Origin: Paraphysomonas bandaiensis
Lineage: Eukaryota > Protista > Chrysophyceae
Direction: 5' to 3'
Assembly (NCBI GenBank): GCA_965644295.1
Contig: CBFFRP010000123.1
Location: 124,001-188,000 of the forward strand
DNA length: 64,000 bases
Part shown: positions 5,291 to 20,112 of the stretch, piece after piece
How positions within the stretch are numbered: position 1 is the stretch's first letter
How the letters are laid out: every line of letters starts with the position of its first letter
Made by a program: the position numbers and the translations under genes
The notes under the pieces: generated by a model
What the model was told of the DNA's origin: nothing
Databases searched by the model: none
Seen by the model: the letters and a program-made list of their open reading frames with translations, nothing else

Positions 5291-8200
5291 ATGTATGAGC
5301 AAGAGTTTTTTAATAGTGTGGAGGATTTTGTTACATGGTCTAATGGAGATCATGTTATTAAGAAAGTGCTGATTGCAAATAATGGTAAGCTGATATTATC
5401 CTACAGAGGGCTCGTAACTGTATTATAGGAATAGGAGCTGTGAAAGCCATTCGATCCATACGAAAGTGGGCATATCAAACATTCGGCAATGAGAGAATGG
5501 TAACTATTTTAAAGTACATGATTTGGTGTAGCTAACGTGTGAATATAGATTAAGTTTGTTGTAATGTGCACTCCTGATGATTTAAGGGCCAATGCGGAGT
5601 TCATACGACTCGCAGATGAAGTAGTAAACGTTCCAGGTGGAAGCAACAACAACAACTATGCTAATGTCAACTTGATATGCGAAATTGCGGAGCAGCTACA
5701 AGTAGATGCAGTTATGCCACTTTGGGGGCATGCGAGTGAAAAACCCAGCTTTCCGAGCTCTCTCGCTGCGTGCAAACGCAAGGTATGCATATTCACTGCA
5801 CACTTTTGCTGCTCATACAACAATATTAGATTGTATTTGTCGGACCTCCTGCAGCCCCAATGCATGCTTTGGGAGATAAAATTGGGTCGACTATCATTGC
5901 ACAGTCTGCTGGTGTACCAACTGCAGGGTGGAATGGAGGAGACATCAAGGTAGACTACGCGCTGGAAGGCCTCTCTCCCGAGGTTTATGATAAAGCAAAT
6001 GTCAAGACTGCACATCAAGCTGTTGAAAGTGCGGTCGCTATTGGTTTTCCTGTAATGATCAAGGCCAGTGAAGGAGGTGGTGGGAAGGGCATAAGACGGG
6101 TAGTATTATTGCGCGCTATCTATCAAGTGCTAAGGTGGACATTTAGGTGACTTGTCGAGAGGAAGTCGAAACTGCCTTCAGACAAGTTCAAGGAGAGGTT
6201 CCAGGATCTCCCATATTTATCATGAAATTAGCAGCTAACTCGCGGCATCTCGAAGTGCAGTTAATTGCGGATAAACACGGTCAAGTGATTGCATTAAGCG
6301 GGAGAGATTGTTCAGTTCAACGTCGACACCAGAAGATTATTGAGGAGGGTCCTCCTTTATCTGCCCCTCCTGAAGTATTTAGACGAATGGAGCAATCTGC
6401 AATTGCTCTAGCCAAAGCGGTATGTTTTAATAACAATTGCGATATATGCAGTGTGTTAAGCGAATGATACAGGTCAGATATGAGAGTGCTGGTACTCTGG
6501 AGTTTCTATTTCACGAGGACACTCACGAGTACTTATTTCTAGAACTTAATCCCCGCTTGCAGGTGAGATTATCCCCTCAAAGTATTCTTTTTGATCCCTG
6601 GGTATTTAGGTGGAGCATCCTGTTACGGAAAATATCCTTGACATCAATTTACCTGCATGTCAACTACAAGTAGCGATGGGTGTGCCACTTCACCGCATTG
6701 GAGACATTCGCAAAATATATGGGCGCCCTATTCGTGGCCGAGATACTATTGATTTTGAAGTGTCTGAGCGTCTCCCTGAATCTGGTTATTGTATTGCAGT
6801 GAGAATCACAGCTGAGAACCCAGATGCATCTTTTCAGCCTACATCTGGAAAAATTACAGACCTTCAGTTCAGATCCGCTATTGACGTTTGGGGATACTTC
6901 TCAGTGAATAACAGTGGGCTTATCCATGAATTCTCAGACTCTCAATTTGGTCATATATTTGCCCATGGAAAGAGTCGCGAGTCAGCCCGACGTGCAATGG
7001 TAGTTGCCCTTAAGGAACTCGAAATCAGAGGTGATATGCGTACTACAGTGGAGTACATTATCCGAATGATGGAATCTGATGACTACGTAAATAATCGCAT
7101 ATCCACGGAGTGGTTAGATCAAAGAATTGCTCACCAAAAGGAGCTTAGAACTGTGGAGTATAGGAATGCTCCACCGAGCTGTCTCATAGCTGTATGTGGT
7201 GCAGCCGTTTTAGGGTTCAGACACTTCGAAGATTCACGAAATTCATTCTTGGACAACTTGAGGGTAGGCCAAGTTCCACCCAAAGATGCAATAGTTAAGA
7301 GCAAAACAATTGAACTTATTTACGACAATATTAAATACAGAATTGGCTGTAGTCGCAGTGGGCCTACCAGTGTCATTATTAGTAGTTGTTCTAAGTCTGA
7401 AGAGGTCAGTGTACAGGAGCTAGCGGATGGAGGATATCTGCTCAATGTGCGAGGGCAAAGTAGGCTGGTGTACATACAGAGTGAAGGAAGCGGATCCCTG
7501 AGAATTATTCTAGATGGATACACTTGTATATTTACACCTGAGTATGATCCAACTAATTTGAAAGCCACTGTAGCCGGTAAGATCGCGCGCCTTCTTGTTC
7601 CAGATGGATCACATGTTAATGCCGGCGACGCTTTTGTGGAGATCGAAGTGATGAAGATGTACATGCCTTTGAGAGCCGATGAGGCTGGTACTGTTCACTT
7701 TCTGCTGAGTGAAGGGGCAGTCATATCTCCAGGTGATATTATTGCAACTATCGAGTTAGACCATCCAGAACTTGTTGTCAAATCACAAGAATTTTCCGGT
7801 GATTTGTTCGGCTACGACACATCGGAAACATTGTCAGAAGAGTCTGTTTTATTGCCACACTTGGCTCTGAAGAGAGCCAGGGGACAATTGGAGAAAGTGC
7901 TTGATGGATTTCCGCTCACCGAAGACGACATGGATAATGCATTAGATACATGTATAAAGTCTTTAATGAATCGACTCCTTCCCGCCTACTGGTTGAGGGA
8001 AGCTATGTCTGTTCTAGGCGGGAGAATAGATAGCGCACTGTACAATCGAATAAACACCCTCAACGATAAATACATAGAGGAATGCTCTAAAGAAGAAACT
8101 TTGACGCCGACGAATACTATCAAATTTCCATCATCAAAAATTATTACTGCTATCTGGGAGGTAGTACAGCAGACCCCTGCAGATGGACGTAGCGCGTTCA

Positions 8201-11200
8201 TGGCTCAAATGGCAGCTGTTTGGGAGATATGCGAAGTGAATTTCCATTCTCCAGAGGTGCAAGTTCTGGTTATGTTAATTCGTTTCATGGAAAAGTTTGT
8301 ACAAGTTGAGAATTTGTTTGACGACATGTCGTATACGGATGTTGTGAACCGTCTCCGTAAAGAGCACGCTGGTGATACAAGCGTTGTATGGGAGTTGTGT
8401 TCATCCCACGTAAATCTAGATGATAAAAACTTGCTCATGCGCAAAGTAATAGACATTGTGGTTACTATTCCCGTTTCTGTGGCTAATCAGCGACCAAAGT
8501 TTCCACCTGGTATTCCATTGGTTCATGAGATCAATACGAGGAACCTGAAGATTAAACTCACTGAACTAAGCCAACTGCGCCAGGCTGTATACAGTCGAAC
8601 ATCTTTTGCTGCTAATTTGGCGTTAATGAAGCAGAATACTCTCACGCTCGATCAGCGCCGCACACGGCTTCATGAAGCACTTGTTGAAGCGCTCAGCACA
8701 GGGGACCGCATCGGATGTGGAGAACGAGTGAACATAATGAAAAAATTTGTTGAAGGAAATATGTCGATTCGGGATTTGTTTGTTGAGTCCATGCAAGAAG
8801 ATTATGAGTATCAGATCGCCTATATCGAGCTTTACCTCAGAAAGATATACCAGAAGACTCATGACATGTCAAATTTTGATGCTGGATACTCTCTTACAGA
8901 TGATGTTGGCACACAGAGTCCCTGGATAACGTTCGAATTTCGAACCCGTAGTTTTGGAGCCGTATCTTCCAGTGTATCTGTTGACGGGTCTGGCACATCG
9001 CCACGCTATAATTACAGTCAGCTTGCCGCGTTGTCACAGCGAGATTCTTACACGAATATGGTTTCTGATTCTGAAGCGGAGAATGAGACATCCTCTGCAG
9101 TGGAAGTAATGCAAACCACAAGATTCGGGGCTTTCGCCACTTTTTCATCGCCTGGTGAATTTGTAAAACTATTTCCGCTGCTTTTGCAAAAAATTCCGCA
9201 AAGCCGTGCAATTACTCCGCTGAAAAAGGGCCCAGTAAATGCCGTACATGCGTGTGTAATGAACGGTAGTTTTTCTTCAGATGGTGAGGCATCCACTTTC
9301 ATATCGAAATACCTCGCAACAATAAAATCTGAACTTCGAGAACGTGGTATTCGGCGTGTTACAGTTCTGATGGGTCAAGCCGAGCAAGAGCACCCTCATG
9401 CACACAAATCACGTGTAGACACGACGGAGAATAATAGTATGTCCATTTTTACATTCCGGTCGAGAACTGACTTTCAGGAGGACATCTTGTATCGGTACAT
9501 CGAAGCTCCTCATGCTTTTCATCTGGATTTGCCACGGCTTGCCAATTTCTCAATATCTTTAGAAGAGGGTCTGCAAACATCATCCGGAAATGTGCAACTG
9601 TATCGTGCTATTCCAGTTGGAGAGAATGGTCCTGTCAGTTATTTTGCTAGACTTGTGAGTTTCACAGTAGACGTTAAAAGTAGTGAAGCTGAGTCTCTGT
9701 TTGTTGAGGCTTTGGACTCCATCGCTCTTGCGATGGGGAGAGATAACAGTGAGGCTGGTAAAGCACGCCGTCCTAATAGAGCCTTTAACCACGTTTTCCT
9801 AAATATAGTTGCCCCGGATATGGTGATTCAACCCCACTTTTACGAAAACAAAATGCGCAAAATATGCACGAAGTACTCCGAAAAGATGGTGAAGCTGGCC
9901 GTTTCGACTGTAGAGCTGAAACTCACATGTCGCCTTCATAGCGACGCGGACCCCATGTTTATTCGACTAAATGTTACGAACCCCACGGGATTTGTAGTTA
10001 AGGTAGAGCAGTATTACGAAGAGTTGGTTGGTCAAACTCCTGTGTTCCGCAGCATAAATTCTTCTTCGGGAGAGTGGGACGGCCTTCCTACCAGCACTCC
10101 TTACCCTACCACAAGCAAGTTCGGTTCCCAGCGCGCGGAAGCACTGGCAGCGTCTGACACTCTCTACGTATACGATTGGCCTGAGTTATTCGAGCAGGGC
10201 GTGAAAGATCAATGGAGCTCTTTTTTCCGTGCGAGACCATCAGTAAGCAAAGACACTATTCCTGAAGATATATTTACTTGTCAAGAACTCGTATTGTGCG
10301 ACAGAAATGACATGACTCCGCTACAGCGGGGTTGGACCGCGATACTCTCCCAGGATGCAGTTATTGCTCCTTGTACAAGGGAGCCTGGTCTAAATGACAT
10401 GGGAATGGTTGGGTGGCTCATGACTATCAAAGCCCCAGAGTGCCGGCAAGGGAGGCAGCTTGTTGTCATTGCGAATGATATTACTCACAAGGCAGGAAGT
10501 TTTGGAACCAAGGAGGATTACTTTTTCTTCAAGGCCTCGGAATTTGCACGGATGATGGAAATTCCCCGCCTTTATCTCGCAGCTAACTCGGGTGCACGTA
10601 TCGGCATGGCTCAAAGTCTGAAAGAAAAGTTCGAAGTCTGTTGGACAGATGAATCTGACCCGTCTAAGGGGTTTCAGTACTTGTATCTAACGAAGAGAGT
10701 ATATGACGAATTTTTAGCTGAGGTTAACGGCGATATCAACTCATTGCCAGTTATATGCAATCTCATTACGGGGCCACATGGTGAAGAGCGATACATGATT
10801 TCCGATATTATTGGTGAAGAGGCTGATCTTGGGGTGGAGAATCTCATGGGGTCTGGTCTAATTGCCGGGGAGACCTCAAAGGCGTATGATAAGATATTCA
10901 CACTAACTCTTGTTGTTGGACGAACTGTTGGTATCGGAGCATACTTAGTTCGTCTGGGACAAAGAACTATCCAGAAGACTCGAATGAGCCCCATCATATT
11001 GACAGGATATCAAGCTCTTAATAAACTAATGGGTAGAGAGATATACACGACAAATGATCAACTAGGTATGTTGACGTTTTAGTATGTGTATTTTAACATT
11101 GCAGTGTAGGTGGGCCAATGATAATGTTTCCCAATGGTGTGACACATTTACTGGCTGAGACACATATGGATTCTATAAAAAAAGCCCTCAACTGGATATC

Positions 11201-12594
11201 TTTTGTTCCATCGTCAAACAAATCCCATCTCCCGGTCCAAGACATTACTGGTCAAGATATTGTAGACCGCCCAGTGGCATTTTGTCCCAAGAAAGGTGAG
11301 ACGTATGACCCTCGCCACTTGATATCCGGCTGTACAACATCAGAAAATGGCACTGAGGTATGGGAATCCGGTTTCTTTGATCGCGATAGTTTTGTAGAAG
11401 TGCTTGAAGGGTGGGCCAAGACGGTGGTTGTTGGACGGGCGCGCCTTGGTGGTATCCCCATGGGTGTTATCATCACCGAGAACAGGACTTCAGAGGCCTT
11501 TATTCCTGCCGATCCTGCGGACAGTACATCTCAGGAAAAGATAATGCAACAGGCAGGTGGGGTGTGGTTTCCAGACTCTGCATACAAGACTGCTCAGGTA
11601 TTTTACTGAAATTGGGCATTGCATAAACTTATAGCTAGTTATACAGGCCTTGAAAGATTTCAACCGCGAAAAACTGCCATGCATCGTGTTTGCTAATTGG
11701 CGGGGATTTTCGGGTGGACAAAGAGACATGTTCGATGAAGTACTAAAATTTGGAAGCATGATTGTGGATGCCTTTGTTGCCTACAACCAACCGCTATTTG
11801 TCTACATTCCCCCACATGCTGAGTTGCGTGGTGGAGCGTGGGTCGTGGTTGATCACACAATCAATGCAGATGTTATGGAATTCTACGCGGCAGAGGATGC
11901 TCGCGGAGGTGTTTTGGAAGCAGCCGGTGCGGCGAGTATTAAATTCCGAGACCGAGAAATTCGCTCCACTGCCAATCGACTGGATCCTGTTCTCGTCCAC
12001 TTAAAACGTGACCTTGATGACTGCGGAGATGCCTCCTCACGGAGAGAAATTGAAAAGAAAATTGCGGAACGTGAAAGGCTTGTGATTGGTGTTTTTAGAC
12101 AAATCGCAGTTCACTTTGCTGATTTGCACGACACTCCTGGACGTATGAGAGCAAAAGGAGTGATTAGGAAGCAAGTAACGTGGGCTCAATCTCGAAAGTT
12201 TTTCTTCTGGAGGCTGCGCCGAAGGTTAGCCGAGTTCGAGGTGGCACAAACTATGATGGATATTGACAATCAAATTACAACTCGTTCTGCCGCCATCGAA
12301 ATTGTAAAAGGGTGGTTTATGGAGCATACAGGTTCTGATTACGATTTGTGGAATTGTGATCGCAAAGCAATGGCTTGGCTTCAGGAGAACACTAGTTATA
12401 TGCGAAAACGATTGGCGGATATGACTAGCACAGTTCAGTCACGCCAACTTGCTAGCCAATTAAGAGATATGCTGAAAACTTCGGTGGAAGAGTCTGGCGA
12501 GCCTGATATTGGTAGAATGATATCTCAAGCTCTTGCCTCATTGCCTGAGGACGACAGGGAAAAGGTTAGGGATGCTTTTGCAAAAGCGAAATAA
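5291..12594 (+). CDS. ACC1: Homomeric acetyl-CoA carboxylase (BC-BCCP-central-CT), probably cytosolic; 9 exons
   Basis: KKVLIANNG start, [24 protein letters not shown], biotin motif EVMKM, CT motifs NSGARIG and [13 protein letters not shown]; introns 5385-5428, 5500-5548, 5783-5829, 6100-6146, 6420-6472, 6563-6609, 11066-11109, 11598-11646; no N-terminal presequence. Confidence 0.97.
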
Positions 12595-12918
12595 ATTTCA
12601 GTATATGGAGTACTGTCTGCCCCATATTGACAGCGTAACTAATTACTGCGTGCGGCCCTCTAGTGGGTGCTGCCGAGTGCTGCGATTGCTCGCCTCTACC
12701 TATGTACACATTGCTTAGTTCAGCAGTTCCCCACTCTGGGTTCTCACTGTATATTCAGCGCTGAATACCGTGTGATTAATTGGCAAAAAATTGGCAACAA
12801 TTTCCAATAATAATAATTGGAATTATCACTATTAAAACCAATTAATTTAATTGGCAATCCATTTAATTGGCTATTATTGCCAATAAATTGAAAACCAATT
12901 AATTGTTACGCAAGCCTG

Positions 12919-14233
12919 CTTTTGTAATTAAAATCAAGGGTACCTATTAGGTACCTCTGTCTACCTAGGTACATTTTTGAGCAATAGATGGTACCTATAG
13001 CTTTTCGAATAGGTGCCACCTATATTATATTGAAGGTCTTTTTATTTAGCAATAGGCGTTAAAAACTCGTTCCAATATAGTGGCTAGTTGAATGCAGGTG
13101 GCACCTATAGCTACCCAGTATACCTAAAGGTACTCCCTAATACACGTACCTATTGAACTACAACCAATATATATTATATTGAAAGTCTTATTATTAGCAA
13201 TAGGCGTTCAAAACCTGCACCAACTTAGTAGCTAGATGAATGCTAGACAAACTAGTTAGACCTCTACCTGTTGCCCCATTCTGACAGCGTAACTAATCAC
13301 TGCGTGCGGCCCCCCAGTGGGTGCTGCTGAGTGTTGCGACCGCGCACTTCTATCTATGTACACATTGCTCAGTTCAGCGGTTCCCCATTCGGGGTCTCAC
13401 TGCATATTCAGCGCTGCTGGATACCGTGTGATAATGATGTAGCTAGTTGGGTTCAGTAGGTAGCTAGCAAATAACGTATGGGACTTAAATCAAGTATTAG
13501 TTAGGTACCCACCCGGCCCCCACCCGGCTCTACCTAAGTACGCGCTCAGAATGGGGCACCTGTAACTAGTCAGTACACACTTTTTTATCCTACTATTGAA
13601 CTACAACCAACTCCTAAGTGCGTAATTGAAGCTTGTGAAGCTTATCGCTAGTATCTATCCTGTATTCTATGTAGCAATTACAGAATATACAGGACTACAC
13701 TATAGGAGTTACGTAGCTATTACAAGTATACAAGTAAACTGAAAATGTAGTAGCTGTTAAAGATACGATTTGTACAACAGAATAATGATGTTGGTATTAA
13801 TTTACGCTTATAGTAGTATTGTATTGGTTGAATTACGTCTTTTTATATAGTAAAATTATGATGTTGTAGCACTGTGACTTAGGAACCACGTCAATCACCA
13901 ACACCAACATTCTGTTCTACAAATCGTATCTTTAACAGCTACTACATTTTCAGTTTCTTTGTATACTTTTAATAGCTACTCCTATAGTGTAGTCCTGTAT
14001 ATTCTGTATTTCATTGCTACATAGAATACAGGATAGATACTAGCGATAAGCTTCACAAGCTTCAATTACGCACTTAGGAGTTGGTTGTAGTTCAATAGGT
14101 ACGTGTATTAGGGAGTACCTTTAGGTATACTGGGTAGCTATAGGTGGCACCTATTCGAAAAGCTATAGGTACCATCTATTGCTCAAAAATGTACCTAGGT
14201 AGACAGAGGTACCCTTGATTTTAATTACAAAAG
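12919..14233. mobile_element. Foldback (long inverted repeat) element; left arm interrupted by insertions
   Basis: About 13890-14233 is the reverse complement of 12919-13023 + 13100-13167 + 13594-13795; spacer about 100 bp. Confidence 0.75.
13272..13558. mobile_element. 287-bp MITE or solo-LTR-like element, perfect 13-bp TIR TGCCCCATTCTGA, 5-bp TSD CCTGT
   Basis: TIRs at 13272-13284 and 13546-13558; CCTGT at 13267-13271 and 13559-13563; homologous to the copies at 12618 and 18657. Confidence 0.85.
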
Positions 14234-14572
14234 TACCTATAGGTACTCAGAGCGGGAGTCTCACTGATGCTGGGAACCCAATTGTTATGAATCTTCAGAA
14301 GATTTATCAAATAATTGCGATTTATCAAGTAATTAACACTAGACCCCCTGTAGCAGTGAAATTTCTTAATTAAAACTGACGCTTTGCAGCACAGAATCAA
14401 TATCAAGGTGTGGTGGTATACAACTGTTCACCTGGTGTATGTTTTGAGTTATCAACAAATAAATAATGTGAGTTGGATGATTGTTGATTACCCACTGATG
14501 TCATCTTATATAATATATAGAATATTTTCCAGAGATATTTGTCTCTGTGCCCAGGCACAGTGGTTACAACTC

Positions 14573-16527
14573 TTAACAAAAGACTTTAACATATGAAAAT
14601 CGAAAACTTTTATTCGTCAATAAACCATATTGAGAGAGCTTATGCTTCACTACAAATTCACGCAGCCTTGGGGACCAATAGCTCAGCATATTTCTTTTAT
14701 CAATAAATAATGCACAATTAAGTTGATCTTTAAACACGAGTTGAGCTGGATTTGTGTAATTTTGAGCCATCCAAAATATATTACAAGTTCTTGTATCAGG
14801 AGAATCTTGGCAGAGTATATTACGCATCTTCTCCGAGAAATTTTTCATTTTCCCAACCCATTTCTCAGCTGTTGTGCCGCTGATCTTTTCTTCAAACGAC
14901 ATTTTAACTTGTGTCCGCAACAAAACTTGATATTCAGACGCTCGACAAATACTAAGATTTAGTCCATCAGAACCATACTCATCGGGGAACTCCTTGTAAA
15001 AAGCGTGTCTTGCGCTCCCAATCAAATCCGTAAGCACCAAATTGTCATATGCATCCTGACAAAGACAAAAGTTTTTTTCTTCGTTTAGCACCAAGTCGCG
15101 CAAAACAATGCCACCGTTCAGGACTAATCCATCTATTGTTGGGATTTCCACGCCAGAGATTCAAAAACGAGCCACTCATTTACCTCATCAGCTGATGCAT
15201 AAACTGAACGTAGCAAAGATAGTTTTTCTGCGTTTGATAAAATTGCTGTTCCCACAGCCGTTTCAAATTGCAAAACACATGCACCAATATCACTTGGATG
15301 GAGAAATCCCACTTTACGTGGGATTACTGTGTCGTCAAAATATATCACACCCTGGTCCATCAGCTCATAGCTTTGTGCAATATCGCGGGGAGCAGTTCTG
15401 AAATTCGACAGAGAGGTCGAAGTAAAGTCACTGGCAGCAATAGCAATGTCTGTCCCTGCGGTTTGCGTGGTTTGCATCCACGCGTCAAACATATATTTCA
15501 TGTAGTCGATGCGAGTTTGATCACCAAATAATCGATTGAAGTGATGTGTCCTTTCAAGCCGACCAAGATAAATGTCTTCGATCCAGCTCGCCAGTCCCCG
15601 AGACTTCACAAACATTTCCTCAATGCTGCTCACGGAAGAAGGAAGAAGAAAAGCCTCCGAACCAATTGCTTCTGTCGTCGCTCGAATGTATCGCTTGGCA
15701 ATGCAGTTCATCGCATCTTCCATTTCGCGGAGAGTCCTAATCGGCTTTAAGTGTAGATCCTTGTATTTCCTGTTGTTCAAACTGTGAAATCTCAGATAAG
15801 ATGGGTATTTGTCTCCGATATGTGGGGCACCAGGGATACAGAAAATGAGAGATCGAAGCACTGCTGCGCTTCCGCTCAAAATTACTAACACAGGCCGAGG
15901 ACCATCTAATTCACCTAGGAAGTGCAGTTCACCTAATATTTGTACGGCCAACTCATCGTCTGGGGATTTGCTATACAAGCACTCCACTTCGTCAACAACA
16001 AGAAGCACGTTGATTTTATGAGCAAGCAAGAAATCCACTAAATCATCACCTCCAATATCATTTAAATCTTCATAATCATATTTTTCGGCAACCGCGCTGG
16101 AAATCAAGGTGAATATACTTTTCTTCGACTTGTCGTCTTTCATATTGAAATAAATTGTTAGCGAACTAGAGGAAGAGTTTAAAACATATGCACATAGAAT
16201 CGATTTGATAAAGAAGGATTTCCCAACTCCACGGGGACCCAAAATTATAAAACAATTTTTCTGACCTCTTCAGCACGACGTATCAAGCTGAGTAAGTCTT
16301 GGAGCCAATTCTAACAATATTTCGCGACGGGATGTATCAAAAAATGTTCGCTCACGACAAACAGTTTCAACGCACACCAAGCTAGAATCGTCGGGATGTG
16401 ACTTTCGGAAATAACGTAGCCAATACCTGGTCAGCTCAAAATTATCATTCAGCAATTCTTTACAATCCCCTAGACCTGATCCTTGTCCCTTTGTGCATAT
16501 ACTCTGTTTAAATAAAAATCTCTTCAT
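14573..16527 (-). pseudogene. P-loop NTPase (STAND/CDC6-like AAA+) + putative PD-(D/E)xK nuclease, Crinkler/CR-effector-like; disrupted
   Basis: Three ORFs join through one in-frame TGA (16272-16270) and one frameshift (~15150); Walker A GPRGVGKS, Walker B LLVVDEVE, sensor strand LVILSGS, C-terminal KEFPDEYGSDG...RTQVK. Confidence 0.7.
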
Positions 16528-18345
16528 ATTTACAATCTTCTTTGTGTAATAAAGAATTAAAGCGTATCGGCAGTCAGCATCTTCTGTTTTCGGAAATGAA
16601 TTGAAGCAAAAATAGTCTCTATTACTGATATACAACTACAGCAGAAATACAGATAATTGTTGTCTCAATATTAGAGGCATCTTGGAACAAAAATATACAA
16701 AGGAGGCCGATACGAGAATTATCTGCTGTGTTCAGTTCTGACAATTCTCAGTTGTTCAGATACTGTATACCAGGTATAGCAATAGACTACCAGTAGATGA
16801 GTTCCAGTTGTGTGAATGAATTTCGTTGTTGAGGCCGTTTCTGACGGTGGTCAAAAAAAAAATTATTTTGGATCATGGTAAAAATTTCTTTCCAACATTC
16901 ACATTCATGGTATGGTAATGCGGCCTATATTAGGAACCTCGAGTCATAATATTGTTATCACGAGTTTTACCAAGCCTATGTCGAGTAGGCTGAGCGCTTG
17001 TTGTGATTCAAACGGTGTCCTGGAACCAGCATATTGCATCCAATATATCTACATATAACTTTTCAATATATATGGCATGAAACCCCCTTTTCTTTACAAA
17101 ACACTGGTTTTTGACAGATTGCAATTGTTATCCTGCATCAAAATTCACAGTTTATGGAGAGCTCCTGAAATCACTGTGAGGTACATAGCAGAGACCAGTT
17201 GCTGAAAACAATGTTGTGATAGCAAAGATGAGATTATGAGTTCTGATTCTGGATTCATTGATAAACGGTTAAGAAATATGCACAGGTCACTGTAGGAGGA
17301 TCTGTCCCTAATTGCGCCTTCCTTGTTGCACTTAATGATCCCACATGTCCCCAAATTCAAAGAATCGTATTATTCTTACTATTTGAGTGATATGAAATCA
17401 TGATATTGACATTCATCTTATTTTGTTGGAATTATGTGCATTCATTGACTGAGCTCTATAAGCGGTATTGACACTCATGGTCCCCTACCCCTTCCAACCA
17501 CGGGTGTAGTTGTCCTATTTTGCAGTGAATTTAATCTCAATGACTGTTTATGATACTGTTATAATGGTTTGATTCATGTAAGTATGCTTTGATGAAATAT
17601 TTAGGCCATATTGGATGAGTTGCTACTTTGCGAAGCAATGTAGTACGCACTTATGTCACTTGTGACGCAAAGTCGTATGATATGATATCAACCCTTCCCA
17701 ATCAAATTGGATGTTTATAATGAGTTATTATAAATAATTTAACTTCATTTTCTTGTTTAGGTTGTTATGTCTTTCACTGTTGGTCTGGAAATGCGATTAT
17801 ATGTAGATAACTTATGCTAGTTGTAATAAACAGCTATCAGACGTTTCACCTATCTATGGTCTCTATTGTATATTCTTCAAGTGTACATATTATATGTGCA
17901 TTTTAGGGTACTGATTATTATTATTATTACGTTTCATTCTGACTCCTATTAAGACGTCATGACTATGATTATATATTGATAACTGATATATATATATTGC
18001 TATTAAACGGACAAAAGACAAAGAAAAGACAACATGATGACTAATAATAAGCATAATAATAAATATATCAACTATGATAACTATATGAGATTATGAGATT
18101 AAGGCTGGAGAAGTTTACTAGGGTATTCCGGGTTTGATATCCACGCTGATAAGGCCGTTCCTTATGACAATCCCAAATTCCATTCCCAAATTTTCAGTTT
18201 CCCAAACTATTGGAGTTTTTTTCTCTAAAATCAAGAATGGGCAATTCATTCCTAGAGACATGCCCAATCCAAATGAAACACTTAATTGTGTTGTCTGTGT
18301 ATATATATTCATATAGATTATACATTTCAATACATATATAGTAGT

Positions 18346-18656
18346 ATGGTGAGAATATACTCTACTAGGCCTAAAGCTCTTCTTGAGAACTATGGTTGTG
18401 TCAAATGCGCTTTGCTCGTTGTTGAACAGAAGACTGAGAAGATTTGACCACTATCAGTTACTTATATGGCATACTGCTATCCCATGTATATGGCCAAGCT
18501 CACTGAGGATGAGAAGGACTCCCTCCGAAGTGATTCGTTGCAGTATATAAAAGTTAAAGGAGAAAGCCGTGAAGACAATGATGTAGACAGTACACGGGGA
18601 CATCTCATCTGGAAGAAGTATGGTCGTCTCAAGGGCGTCACTATGAATGAGCTGAT
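18346..18656 (+). pseudogene. Truncated gene fragment cut by the right-hand repeat of the composite element
   Basis: Frame MVRIYSTRPK...KI*PLSVTYMAYC...GVTMNELI has one internal TGA (18445) and runs straight into TGCCCC at 18657. Confidence 0.45.
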
Positions 18657-18933
18657 TGCCCCATATTGACAGCGTAACTAATTACTGCGTGCGGCCCTCT
18701 AGTGGGTGCTGCCGAGTGCTGCGATTGCTCGCCTCTACCTATGTACACATTGCTTAGTTCAGCAGTTCCCCACTCTGGGTTCTCACTGCATATTCAGCGC
18801 TGCTGGATACCGTGTGATAATGATGTAGCTAGTTGGGTTCAGTAGGTAGCTAGCAAATAACGTATGGGACTTAAATCAAGTATTAGTTAGGTACCCACCC
18901 GGACCCCACCTGGATCTACCTCAGAATGAGGCA
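18657..18933. repeat. Full-length copy of the TG...CA element forming the right end of the composite insertion
   Basis: Starts TGCCCCATATTGA and ends TCAGAATGAGGCA; colinear with 13272-13558. Confidence 0.85.
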
Positions 18934-20112
18934 CTGTCTATTTGCTTGGAGTAATAGCTACAAGGAACTGTGGGTTAAATGTATGTGTCGAGTGACTATT
19001 AGCTAGGTGACCTTTTCGATAAATATTCCTTTTGCTTGAGGAATAAGAATTCTTTCGAAATAAGCATAACAGAAAATAAGAGCCAGCACATTTCTACAAT
19101 ACGTTTGATATATTGTTAACTTCAATAGACCTACTGTTTTATAACAATTAAAGAATAGAACTTCGCTTCCGTATGTCACAATATATCATACGCGTATATA
19201 CAGTTCCTGCGAAAAAATGAGTAATATAATAGTAACAATACAGCCTGCATTCATTAGTTTGTAGCTATAGAGCTATAGTACGCGTAAGTCACATGTTGAG
19301 TTGTGAAATTTTATGAATTCAACGCACTGAATATAAATATATTGAATAGAAGAGATGTTAAAGTGCTTGATTTAGTAACTAGAATTCTTTGTACGTCGTA
19401 TTTTCGGATTACTATGAACTATGAACTCTATAAACTATACACAAGAGTATGACTGATGAATGACATGTGAAATTCAAAATGCAACTCCTAAATAGTGTAA
19501 ATCAGTATACTATACTTACAAACGTGGTACGTGATTTATTTTATATTGAAACTGTAAAATAGATAAGTATGCTGGTGTTCTTAGCTGTGCCTTTACAGCT
19601 TTACAGTTGCCAATATATTCGAAATTGACAATTTAGAATTCTTTTAGCTGAAAGGAAAGTACACACACATTGTGATCAATACCCCTTATCAGACTTCCAT
19701 CCGATTCACTAAATTTATATCGTCACAACTACCACTCAATATAGAAAGATCAGATAATATAGTGACGATCGTGTATGGTCAATATATTTCAGTTTCACTC
19801 ACATAGTTCATATCATATCTTAGTTTATGTAATGCTGTTTGTAACTACTATATTCGTATGTAATGGTCATATTCAAACACTGCTTTTAACTGCATATAGA
19901 CAAGCGAAACAAAATACTCGATGTACATTATTATTACGGCGATATACTACAATACAATTATAGAATAGATACACTGCATCTATTGTTTCAATGTTGCTGC
20001 TATTTTGATATGCCGGACAGTTTTCGCTGTTGGGCAATCATGTTGTGTACTGGCATCGAAAAGCATAGAAAATACACTCTGATCGTAAACTACAACATCC
20101 ACAAATCAAAAC

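Follow-up and report, generated by a model that had tools for sequence, protein, structure and literature searches.

The locus downstream of the acetyl-CoA carboxylase gene

The window analysed here is a 64,000-nucleotide stretch of the genome of the chrysophyte Paraphysomonas bandaiensis (GenBank assembly GCA_965644295.1, contig CBFFRP010000123.1, positions 124,001 to 188,000 of the forward strand). Directly 3' of an acetyl-CoA carboxylase (ACC) gene, the window carries a 6.3-kb block (12618-18933) in which two direct copies of a short repeat, here called element E, enclose an interior of about 5.9 kb (Table 1). The gene was recognised by Pfam ACC_central (8e-91) on an upstream open reading frame (ORF; 6610-11082) and by Carboxyl_trans on its last exon-like ORF. 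Its stop codon occupies 12592-12594, and the insertion starts 23 bp farther on, as an earlier sequence-only reading of this DNA had placed it.

The same 5-mer, CTGTC, was found directly outside both copies of E, again as that reading had it. On the left it is followed by TGCCCCATATTGA..., which begins with TGCCCC; on the right it follows the end of copy 2 (...CAGAATGAGGCA, with the final GAGGCA at 18933). Two random 5-mers from the window would be identical with P = 1.3e-3. The flanks of copy 2 itself are unlike (CTGAT on the left and CTGTC on the right), so that copy 2 has no duplication of its own. Neither copy is individually enclosed by a duplication, and a single 5-bp duplication stands at the outer ends of the whole unit. 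Outside the unit, the flanking sequences occur only here in the assembly and form continuous DNA with the ACC gene region.

The two enclosing copies described earlier are both present and in direct orientation, but copy 1 is a fragment of 159 bp and only copy 2 is full length, with 10 bp missing close to its right end. Copy 1 breaks where a short AT-rich repeat starts, and that junction is unique in the genome. Over their first ~145 bp the two copies differ by one substitution (element position 133), the number previously counted; beyond position 133 they differ further by a 3-bp indel and one A/G change at about 146-153. Their left end, TGCCCCATATTGA, had been taken for a variant private to these two copies. 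This proved incorrect, ATATTGA being the commonest form in the family. The independent copy of E reported at 13272 was recovered as a nested solo element with its own duplication, CCTGT, at 13267-13271 and 13559-13563. Genome-wide, the GCTGCTGG variant (a 3-bp insertion and an A-to-G change) occurs only in this nested solo E and in copy 2 (13406-13432 and 18792-18818, 5.4 kb apart). This distribution shows that the two have exchanged a short tract, and indicates gene conversion acting locally on dispersed repeats.

Between the copies, the 5.9 kb of DNA form a mosaic in which pseudogenes stand among other dispersed repeats. The 'ATTGGCAA' repeat that abuts copy 1 has further copies at 90-93% identity on C199, C138, C123, C164 and C216. 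The ends of the foldback element belong to a high-copy family, and the last ~100 bp before 13272 are found in at least 40 copies at 95-99% identity. The sequence-only reading had listed a foldback element, an NTPase gene and a truncated gene between the copies; all three are there, but the NTPase gene is frameshifted. Its match to AAA_22/NACHT is weak. Relative to a paralog at C29:21170-22845, which reads through at this point, it has a 1-bp deletion at ~15140-15150, a stop codon lies immediately upstream of the P-loop frame, and no in-frame ATG precedes the P-loop. The C29 paralog (90% identity) is the only one detected, is more broken still, and has no position between E copies in the 16 kb examined. 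The proposal that the block is a vehicle for spreading Crinkler-type genes therefore fails. No transposase or gag/pol was found inside the insertion with Pfam and no purine tract lies before either copy, which bears out the earlier reading on these points; tRNAs and Rfam families are absent from window positions 12.0-19.5 kb.

The truncated gene is informative about how the block arose. The stump has 65% identity to a 354-aa ORF on C275 and, over 64 bp, 97% identity to a copy on C525 that runs on past the point of the E junction. The remaining ~300 codons are absent from the window, where tblastn with the C275 protein returned the fragment only. Because the gene cut short by copy 2 does not continue anywhere at the locus, two independent in-place insertions of E are excluded. 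The junction between the interior and copy 2 was formed elsewhere and brought here without the rest of the gene. The 'GHLIWKKY...FLIFGPPAAP' family to which the stump belongs (C275 segment L053:225-1289, C525 and the window) is multi-copy, without a Pfam match and with differing truncation points; it may itself be element-borne.

Table 1. Features of the window insertion, paired E copies with a shared outer 5-mer, and ORFs of the C69 unit. Positions are those of the window unless a C or L handle is given.
Feature	Position	Strand	Evidence or remark
Last exon-like ORF of the ACC gene	11650-12594	+	Pfam Carboxyl_trans 4.9e-52
Left 5-bp target-site duplication, CTGTC	12613-12617		Read directly from the sequence
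Copy 1 of E, outer 159 bp only, TGCCCCATATTGA terminus intact	12618-12776	+	Alignments
Short AT-rich 'ATTGGCAA' dispersed repeat (~130-146 bp family) plus 14-bp spacer	12777-12918		Abuts the break of copy 1
Foldback element, long nested inverted repeats	12919 to ~14246		Inverted repeats I1-I6, 27-86 nt, 92-100%
Nested solo E, full length (287 bp), inside the foldback	13272-13558	+	Alignment, inverted-repeat search, flanks
P-loop NTPase pseudogene (AAA_22/NACHT-like) plus unassigned C-terminal part	14573-16635	-	Pfam AAA_22 2.6e-7
Three dispersed repeat families	16563-16715; 16835-17120 (~290-bp family); 17116-17822 (~707-bp family)		Many genomic copies, 74-95% identity
5' gene fragment, 'GHLIWKKY...FLIFGPPAAP' family	18369-18656	+	Ends exactly at the first base of copy 2
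Copy 2 of E, full length (277 bp), both termini present	18657-18933	+	Alignments
Right 5-bp target-site duplication, CTGTC	18934-18938		Read directly; identical to 12613-12617
Direct pair	Window		Outer 5-mer CTGTC; ~5.9-kb interior
Direct pair	C77		Outer 5-mer TCACG; 4.8-kb spacing; repeats 100% identical
Direct pair	C103		Outer 5-mer CGCTC
Direct pair	C362		Outer 5-mer CCCCA
Direct pair	C263		Outer 5-mer CTCAC
Direct pair	C419		Outer 5-mer ATCTC
Direct pair	C430		Outer 5-mer CCTAT; 12.4 kb
Inverted pair	C358		Outer 5-mer CAGTG, perfect; terminal inverted repeats of at least 1.2 kb, E at the tips
ORF, 427 aa, intact	C69		rve integrase; Pfam rve 34.5 bits against a cut-off of 32.6
ORF, 187 aa	C69		A32-type packaging ATPase; Pfam Pox_A32 51.3 bits against a cut-off of 22.8
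ORF, 143 aa	C69		Tyrosine-recombinase fragment
ORF, 760 aa	L049:708-2990 = C69:340207-342489		Crypton-type recombinase by protein atlas (NDC10_II/GCR1_C clusters, score 0.98)
ORF, 543 aa	C69		Coiled-coil or fibre-like hints only
ORF, 231 aa	C69		Itself without a Pfam match; F5/8 type C recognised in its C77 counterpart

Element E as a repeat family

Element E is a non-coding repeat of about 285 bp (277-287 bp) with TG...CA ends and a terminal inverted repeat of 13-20 bp. A 20-mer pattern of its ends has 380 matches in the 62.6-Mb assembly, and the reversed control pattern has none; the 380 terminal matches suggest a copy number of about 190. Some members are more than 96% identical. Solo copies are flanked by perfect 5-bp duplications (CCTGT, ATATT, ACAAC, CATTT and CTGAT), and ATAAT is duplicated around a copy with a 1.5-kb insert of its own. 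With a length below 600 bp, terminal inverted repeats, a fixed 5-bp duplication and a high copy number, E has the properties of a miniature inverted-repeat transposable element (MITE). From the 5-bp duplications of the solo copies and the TG...CA ends it follows that E is moved by an enzyme that recognises these ends and makes a 5-bp staggered cut. Targets containing CTG (CTGTC, CCTGT, CTGAT, CAGTG) seem to be favoured.

Several related arrangements were seen alongside. The same TGCCCCATTCTGAG termini recur in a second non-coding family, 514-529 bp long, whose 5-bp duplications are GTTGC and GAGAT (C358 L034:2557-3070; C65 L037:1070-1598). At C146:84707-85143, on C297 (L033:570-985) and in the window (12618-12776), a full copy of E comes after a partial one that retains 131, 154 or 159 bp of its left side; these partial copies are broken close to a perfect 16-bp palindrome, TATTCAGCGCTGAATA, at the centre of the element. 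Abutted ends of E, the footprint of a circle junction, were absent at spacings of 0-6 bp.

Paired E copies with a single duplication

The arrangement in the window recurs elsewhere in the genome. Flanks were checked for every pair of E copies that was reached, in a census of genomic pairs that is partial. Seven direct pairs, the window included, share one perfect outer 5-mer, as does one inverted pair (Table 1). In C72 and in the inverted pair on C617 the outer 5-mers match at 4/5 positions. The earlier claim that the block is one insertion unit, made of TG...CA copies and unrelated DNA within a single 5-bp duplication, is supported, and it extends to six further direct pairs and one inverted pair. 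The other paired copies that it called for, with different duplications and different cargo, were found.

The two repeats of one unit are closely alike. They differ by 0-2.5%, against 6.6% between units in the same position, and within the comparison set they were mutual nearest neighbours in 5/5 units compared, the window being the exception. On C77 and on C103, private deletions are common to both repeats. This near-identity suggests that a single template was copied into both repeats of a unit, much as happens in viruses whose terminal repeats are direct and in elements with long terminal repeats (LTRs); gene conversion could also yield such similarity. In the C419 unit, one repeat is reduced to its outer 76 bp and the other is full, inside a perfect duplication. 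Since C419 shows the same layout, the fractured-plus-full arrangement of the window is a recurrent state of such units.

Two further loci deserve mention. In C362:229800-233300, E lies at segment positions 548-832 and 2667-2951 around a 1.8-kb non-coding interior, with CCCCA outside and GTTAT on both inner sides. The inner GTTAT pattern is that expected from a circle or a tandem unit with one inserted E as precursor. An apparent pair on C169 was rejected as an E unit. There, two stretches 12.8 kb apart (173500-176500 and 186300-189300) share 99.7% identity for 2.9 kb or more, and in both a left end of E follows GGGTGGAGGG; either a segment was duplicated here recently, or large units stand in tandem.

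The cargo differs widely among units. The C263 unit (485174-490579) holds an intact 559-aa ORF with ankyrin repeats, which has relatives in C72 and beside the C148 copy. The inverted C358 unit (82975-92405; 9.4 kb) encodes an 883-aa membrane protein with FG-GAP repeats, whose N-terminus is a long CMYV repeat. In the C77 unit, a 128-aa G6PD_N fragment (3.9e-13; L031:2867-3253 = C77:228866-229249) is accompanied by an F5/8 type C ORF. The only other match to this fragment is an 85% identical ORF of similar size at C411:3396-3779. Another C77 segment, L031:3312-3755, was considered as an adenain-like protease and found no support in Pfam. Because interiors range from ankyrin and FG-GAP genes to a G6PD fragment, the idea of a cargo carrier holds for the E family.

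An integrase-bearing unit on C69

The sequence-only reading had suggested a search for an autonomous DDE element with the ends of E. A candidate was found at C69:333501-346634, a 13.1-kb unit bounded by direct E copies with an rve integrase between them. These copies align co-linearly along 232 bp, in which 1-2 mismatches and one gap occur, and the downstream copy lacks its last ~53 bp. Among solved structures, foamy-virus integrase comes nearest to the C69 integrase, and the alignment matches two residues of the catalytic triad, the second D and the E. The gene exists in two identical intact copies, on C69 and on C603, where the interior of the unit is present a second time (C603:3580-11266), and in two degraded relatives; three distant relatives have 29% identity. 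No reverse transcriptase (RT), polymerase or capsid was recognised in the C69 unit. Among its remaining ORFs, searches of Pfam, PHROGs and PDB sequences gave no match to a capsid, penton, maturation protease or polymerase/primase-helicase. The 543-aa ORF, considered as a capsid, gave only coiled-coil or fibre hints when ESM Atlas and a word-based homology search were added to these three. The 760-aa Crypton-like ORF is probably nested in the unit, since its 3.8-kb block is absent from the C603 copy.

The link between E and this integrase is physical. The exact junctions of the C69 interior with E recur at other loci, the downstream one at seven and the upstream one at three, and interior homology ties C77, C430, C6, C103, C291 and C419 to the C69 element. 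Given this recurrence, E is an integral end of the C69 element and no chance neighbour. Other candidate partners were rejected. Scanning the genome for Pfam rve turned up at least 150 matches; no E termini lie close to the rve-only ORFs on C2 and C288, and a retrotransposon on C65, beside an E-type copy, has unrelated LTRs of its own. The latter (L037:2567-7860) is of an ordinary kind and young: its 293-bp LTRs are 100% identical, and it contains long pol-type ORFs.

Proposed integration of E-bounded units and its alternatives

The reading preferred here, with confidence that is evenly balanced, is that the window block is an E-bounded unit with an LTR-like or composite layout, inserted at the DNA level by the integrase family represented on C69. 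In this model E would serve as the terminal repeat of a family with the layout E-interior-E, mostly in direct orientation. A unit would integrate as a single piece, through a retroviral-type DDE (rve) integrase acting on the two outermost TGCCCCAT... termini. The TG...CA ends, the 5-bp duplication in either orientation of the pair and the associated rve gene are the grounds for this step. The 5-bp staggered cut would leave one CTGTC on each side of the window unit. The C69 unit, with its interior duplicated on C603, is the candidate source of the enzyme, and we infer that its integrase moves E units. The substrate would be either a composite that has been cut out or a replicated linear DNA with direct terminal repeats. 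The interior would be exchangeable, with ankyrin, FG-GAP, G6PD-fragment or lectin-like genes in other units. In the window the unit would have brought 5.9 kb of repeat-rich DNA, including the NTPase gene and the 5' stump of another gene. The window unit may later have decayed, or may already have been defective, with the inner part of copy 1 lost and the NTPase frameshifted, and copy 2 has swapped a short tract with the nested solo E.

Several observations weigh against this reading. Neither an empty site for the insertion nor a second copy of the window interior, either of which would speak to mobility of the window unit, was found in the assembly. The interior has no homology to the C69 element, and neither of that element's interior ends is present in it. 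Copy 1 and copy 2 resemble one another no more than they resemble the C358 copy, and the sequences give no proof of a common template. Gene conversion is active at the window locus and could mimic the similarity expected from a single template. Matching flanks are absent from the pairs on C29 and C295 and from the inverted pairs on C210, C620 and C525. Only two intact integrase copies exist, and their link to the E termini is one of physical association. Retroviral-type integrases are not known to excise DNA, and this reading offers no origin for a linear E-X-E molecule.

Of the three mechanisms put forward by the sequence-only reading, the LTR-like carrier and the composite fit best. The candidate partner, however, is no retrotransposon, as it has rve and A32 genes and no RT. 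Integration of a circle or a repair template remains as a rival. Here, host recombination or repair would have captured the interior in a resident solo E at CTGTC, whose duplication would be the one now seen outside. In one variant, a circle with one E and cargo recombines with the resident E in a Campbell-type event, like an IS26 translocatable unit; in the other, a break in the resident E is repaired by copying another E with its flank, and the other side is end-joined. Bacterial IS26 units are reported to act so (PMC4196232). Capture would retain the outer CTGTC without excision by an integrase, and would account for a fractured copy 1 that abuts unrelated DNA and for a copy 2 whose left end adjoins flanking DNA of a different E insertion, here the truncated gene. 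It also agrees with the local E-E exchange demonstrated at the window, with the tandems of a left fragment and a full copy on C146 and C297, and with C362, where GTTAT on both inner sides and CCCCA outside are expected from a circle with one inserted E. However, recombination between unrelated E copies should yield reciprocal chimeras about 6% apart, whereas the repeats of units are 0-2.5% apart and have private indels in common. The resident and incoming copies would have to belong to one young subfamily. Furthermore, no donor locus with the window interior beside an E was found in the assembly, and the inverted C358 pair within its perfect duplication is left unexplained. Capture is considered unlikely. 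A different view takes E for the LTR of a non-autonomous retrotransposon, similar to large retrotransposon derivatives (LARDs) or terminal-repeat retrotransposons in miniature (TRIMs), with RT supplied in trans and solo E copies as solo LTRs. Such elements would leave what is seen here, namely 285-bp repeats that are direct, end in TG...CA and lie inside a 5-bp duplication, together with high identity within units and abundant solos, and the hundreds of LTR retrotransposons in the genome are a possible source of enzyme. A purine run, which keeps this option alive, stands directly before the downstream repeat in two unrelated types of interior (GGGTGGGGGG in C69/C77/C430 and GGAGGAGGGG in C263), yet it is absent before either window copy and also in C103, C362 and C419. 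No primer-binding site was seen: the bases past the upstream repeat, judged by eye, vary between units and in none begin with TGG, and the window has no tRNA-like or Rfam match. Among the sampled pairs there is no RT element with E as its LTR, the RT element near an E-type copy having unrelated 293-bp LTRs, and RT is lacking from the single coding unit, which encodes an integrase and a packaging ATPase. A terminal inverted repeat of 13-20 bp is long for an LTR, and inverted pairs within one duplication (C358, and C617 at 4/5) are impossible by reverse transcription. An LTR retrotransposon is accordingly judged improbable.

If two unrelated E insertions had been brought together by rearrangement, their outer 5-mers would match by chance. 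The apparent preference for CTG raises that chance somewhat, and copies 1 and 2 are not uniquely alike. Yet a chance of about 1.3e-3 per pair is hard to square with the same pattern in six other direct pairs; moreover, copy 2 has differing flanks (CTGAT and CTGTC) and no duplication of its own, and the gene that it interrupts does not resume on its other side. Such a coincidence is very hard to credit. An error of assembly, with reads of different E loci joined through the repeat, is made conceivable by the roughly 190 copies of E, some of which exceed 96% identity. Here too the evidence runs the other way. The key junctions lie outside the shared repeat, that at the break of copy 1 being found nowhere else in the genome; the DNA on either side of the unit is single-copy and joins up with the ACC region; and 285 bp is short for misjoining a long-read contig. 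We regard an artefact as highly improbable.

Integration of an E-bounded unit by a C69-type integrase may also be placed in a wider and more speculative scheme, which we offer tentatively and consider doubtful as a whole. According to this scheme, E units would be integrated forms of a DNA-only, virus-derived element, that is, a polinton-like lineage without capsid or polymerase genes. It would have direct LTR-like repeats, both regenerated from one template in each cycle (for instance, from a circle with one repeat or from a concatemer), and a retroviral-type integrase. Its interior would readily be swapped for host DNA, which would make it a gene-transducing vehicle of eukaryotes and a DNA analogue of the LTR provirus.

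Comparison with known elements

Polintons (Mavericks) and polinton-like viruses (PLVs) resemble the C69 unit in combining an rve integrase with an A32-type packaging ATPase, and resemble E units in their short duplications and terminal repeats of a few hundred bp. PLVs with rve integrases make duplications of 5-6 bp (PMC12220804). The mark by which the PLVs and Polintons described so far are recognised is the terminal inverted repeat, which published pipelines use as a filter (PMC10120064, PMC12220804). In contrast, most E units, the C69 unit among them, have direct repeats, with inverted ones in C358, C210 and C617. No capsid, protease or polymerase was recognised in the C69 unit, and E also exists in about 190 copies and as solos, unlike the ends of PLVs or Polintons.

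LARDs, TRIMs and solo LTRs have in common with E units the direct TG...CA repeats, the 5-bp duplication, the near-identical pair, the many solos and the interiors free of enzymes. They differ in that the interiors of E units are unrelated to each other, with no conserved LARD body, and in that E has a long terminal inverted repeat and forms inverted pairs within one duplication. Neither a primer-binding site nor an RT partner was found for E units. The Ginger2/Tdd transposons, such as TDD-4 and TDD-5 of Dictyostelium, are similar to the E system in their integrase-like DDE enzyme, 5-bp duplications and repeats of similar size. The terminal repeats of TDD-4 and TDD-5 are 260-297 bp long and inverted, with TGTNR termini (PMC2836005). 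E, however, begins with TGCCC and is mostly direct, and the C69 unit has several genes including a packaging ATPase, against the single transposase of Ginger elements.

Composite transposons offer another likeness, as E units also take arbitrary host DNA as cargo. In maize Ac/Ds macrotransposons and composite insertions, in transposons flanked by insertion sequences (ISs) and in IS26 units, pairs of elements, one of them sometimes fractured, carry the intervening DNA within one duplication of the length typical of the family (PMC4270019, PMC9910405, PMC4196232). Those systems use hAT or IS transposases and independent flanking copies, whereas the repeats of an E unit look as if they came from a single template. 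Pack-MULEs and other Pack-type elements likewise have terminal repeats around captured fragments, comparable to the G6PD_N fragment of C77 and to the truncated gene and NTPase pseudogene of the window. They belong to a different superfamily, however, and E units also carry whole ORFs (ankyrin, FG-GAP). Mutator-like elements (MULEs) make duplications of 9-11 bp. With LTR-like repeats in direct orientation, an integrase but no RT, and cargo that can be exchanged, the E family draws together features of the systems compared here and is filed under none of them.

Implications

Taken alone, the window has modest significance, as it holds an old or defective unit 23 bp past an essential gene, with a dead NTPase as cargo. 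The family has a wider bearing. If the reading of the family is true, its layout lies between those of LTR retroelements, Ginger/Tdd transposons and polinton-like viruses. This alga would then have an integrase-driven element with LTR-like, direct and near-identical ends, whose only coding member is virus-like and without RT. Forms with direct repeats could escape PLV screens that are based on terminal inverted repeats, because the complete PLVs in both surveys were recognised by such repeats (PMC10120064, PMC12220804). E units demonstrably hold whole host-type genes (ankyrin, FG-GAP) as well as gene fragments (G6PD). To conclude, they provide a concrete system for gene capture and shuffling in a protist genome.

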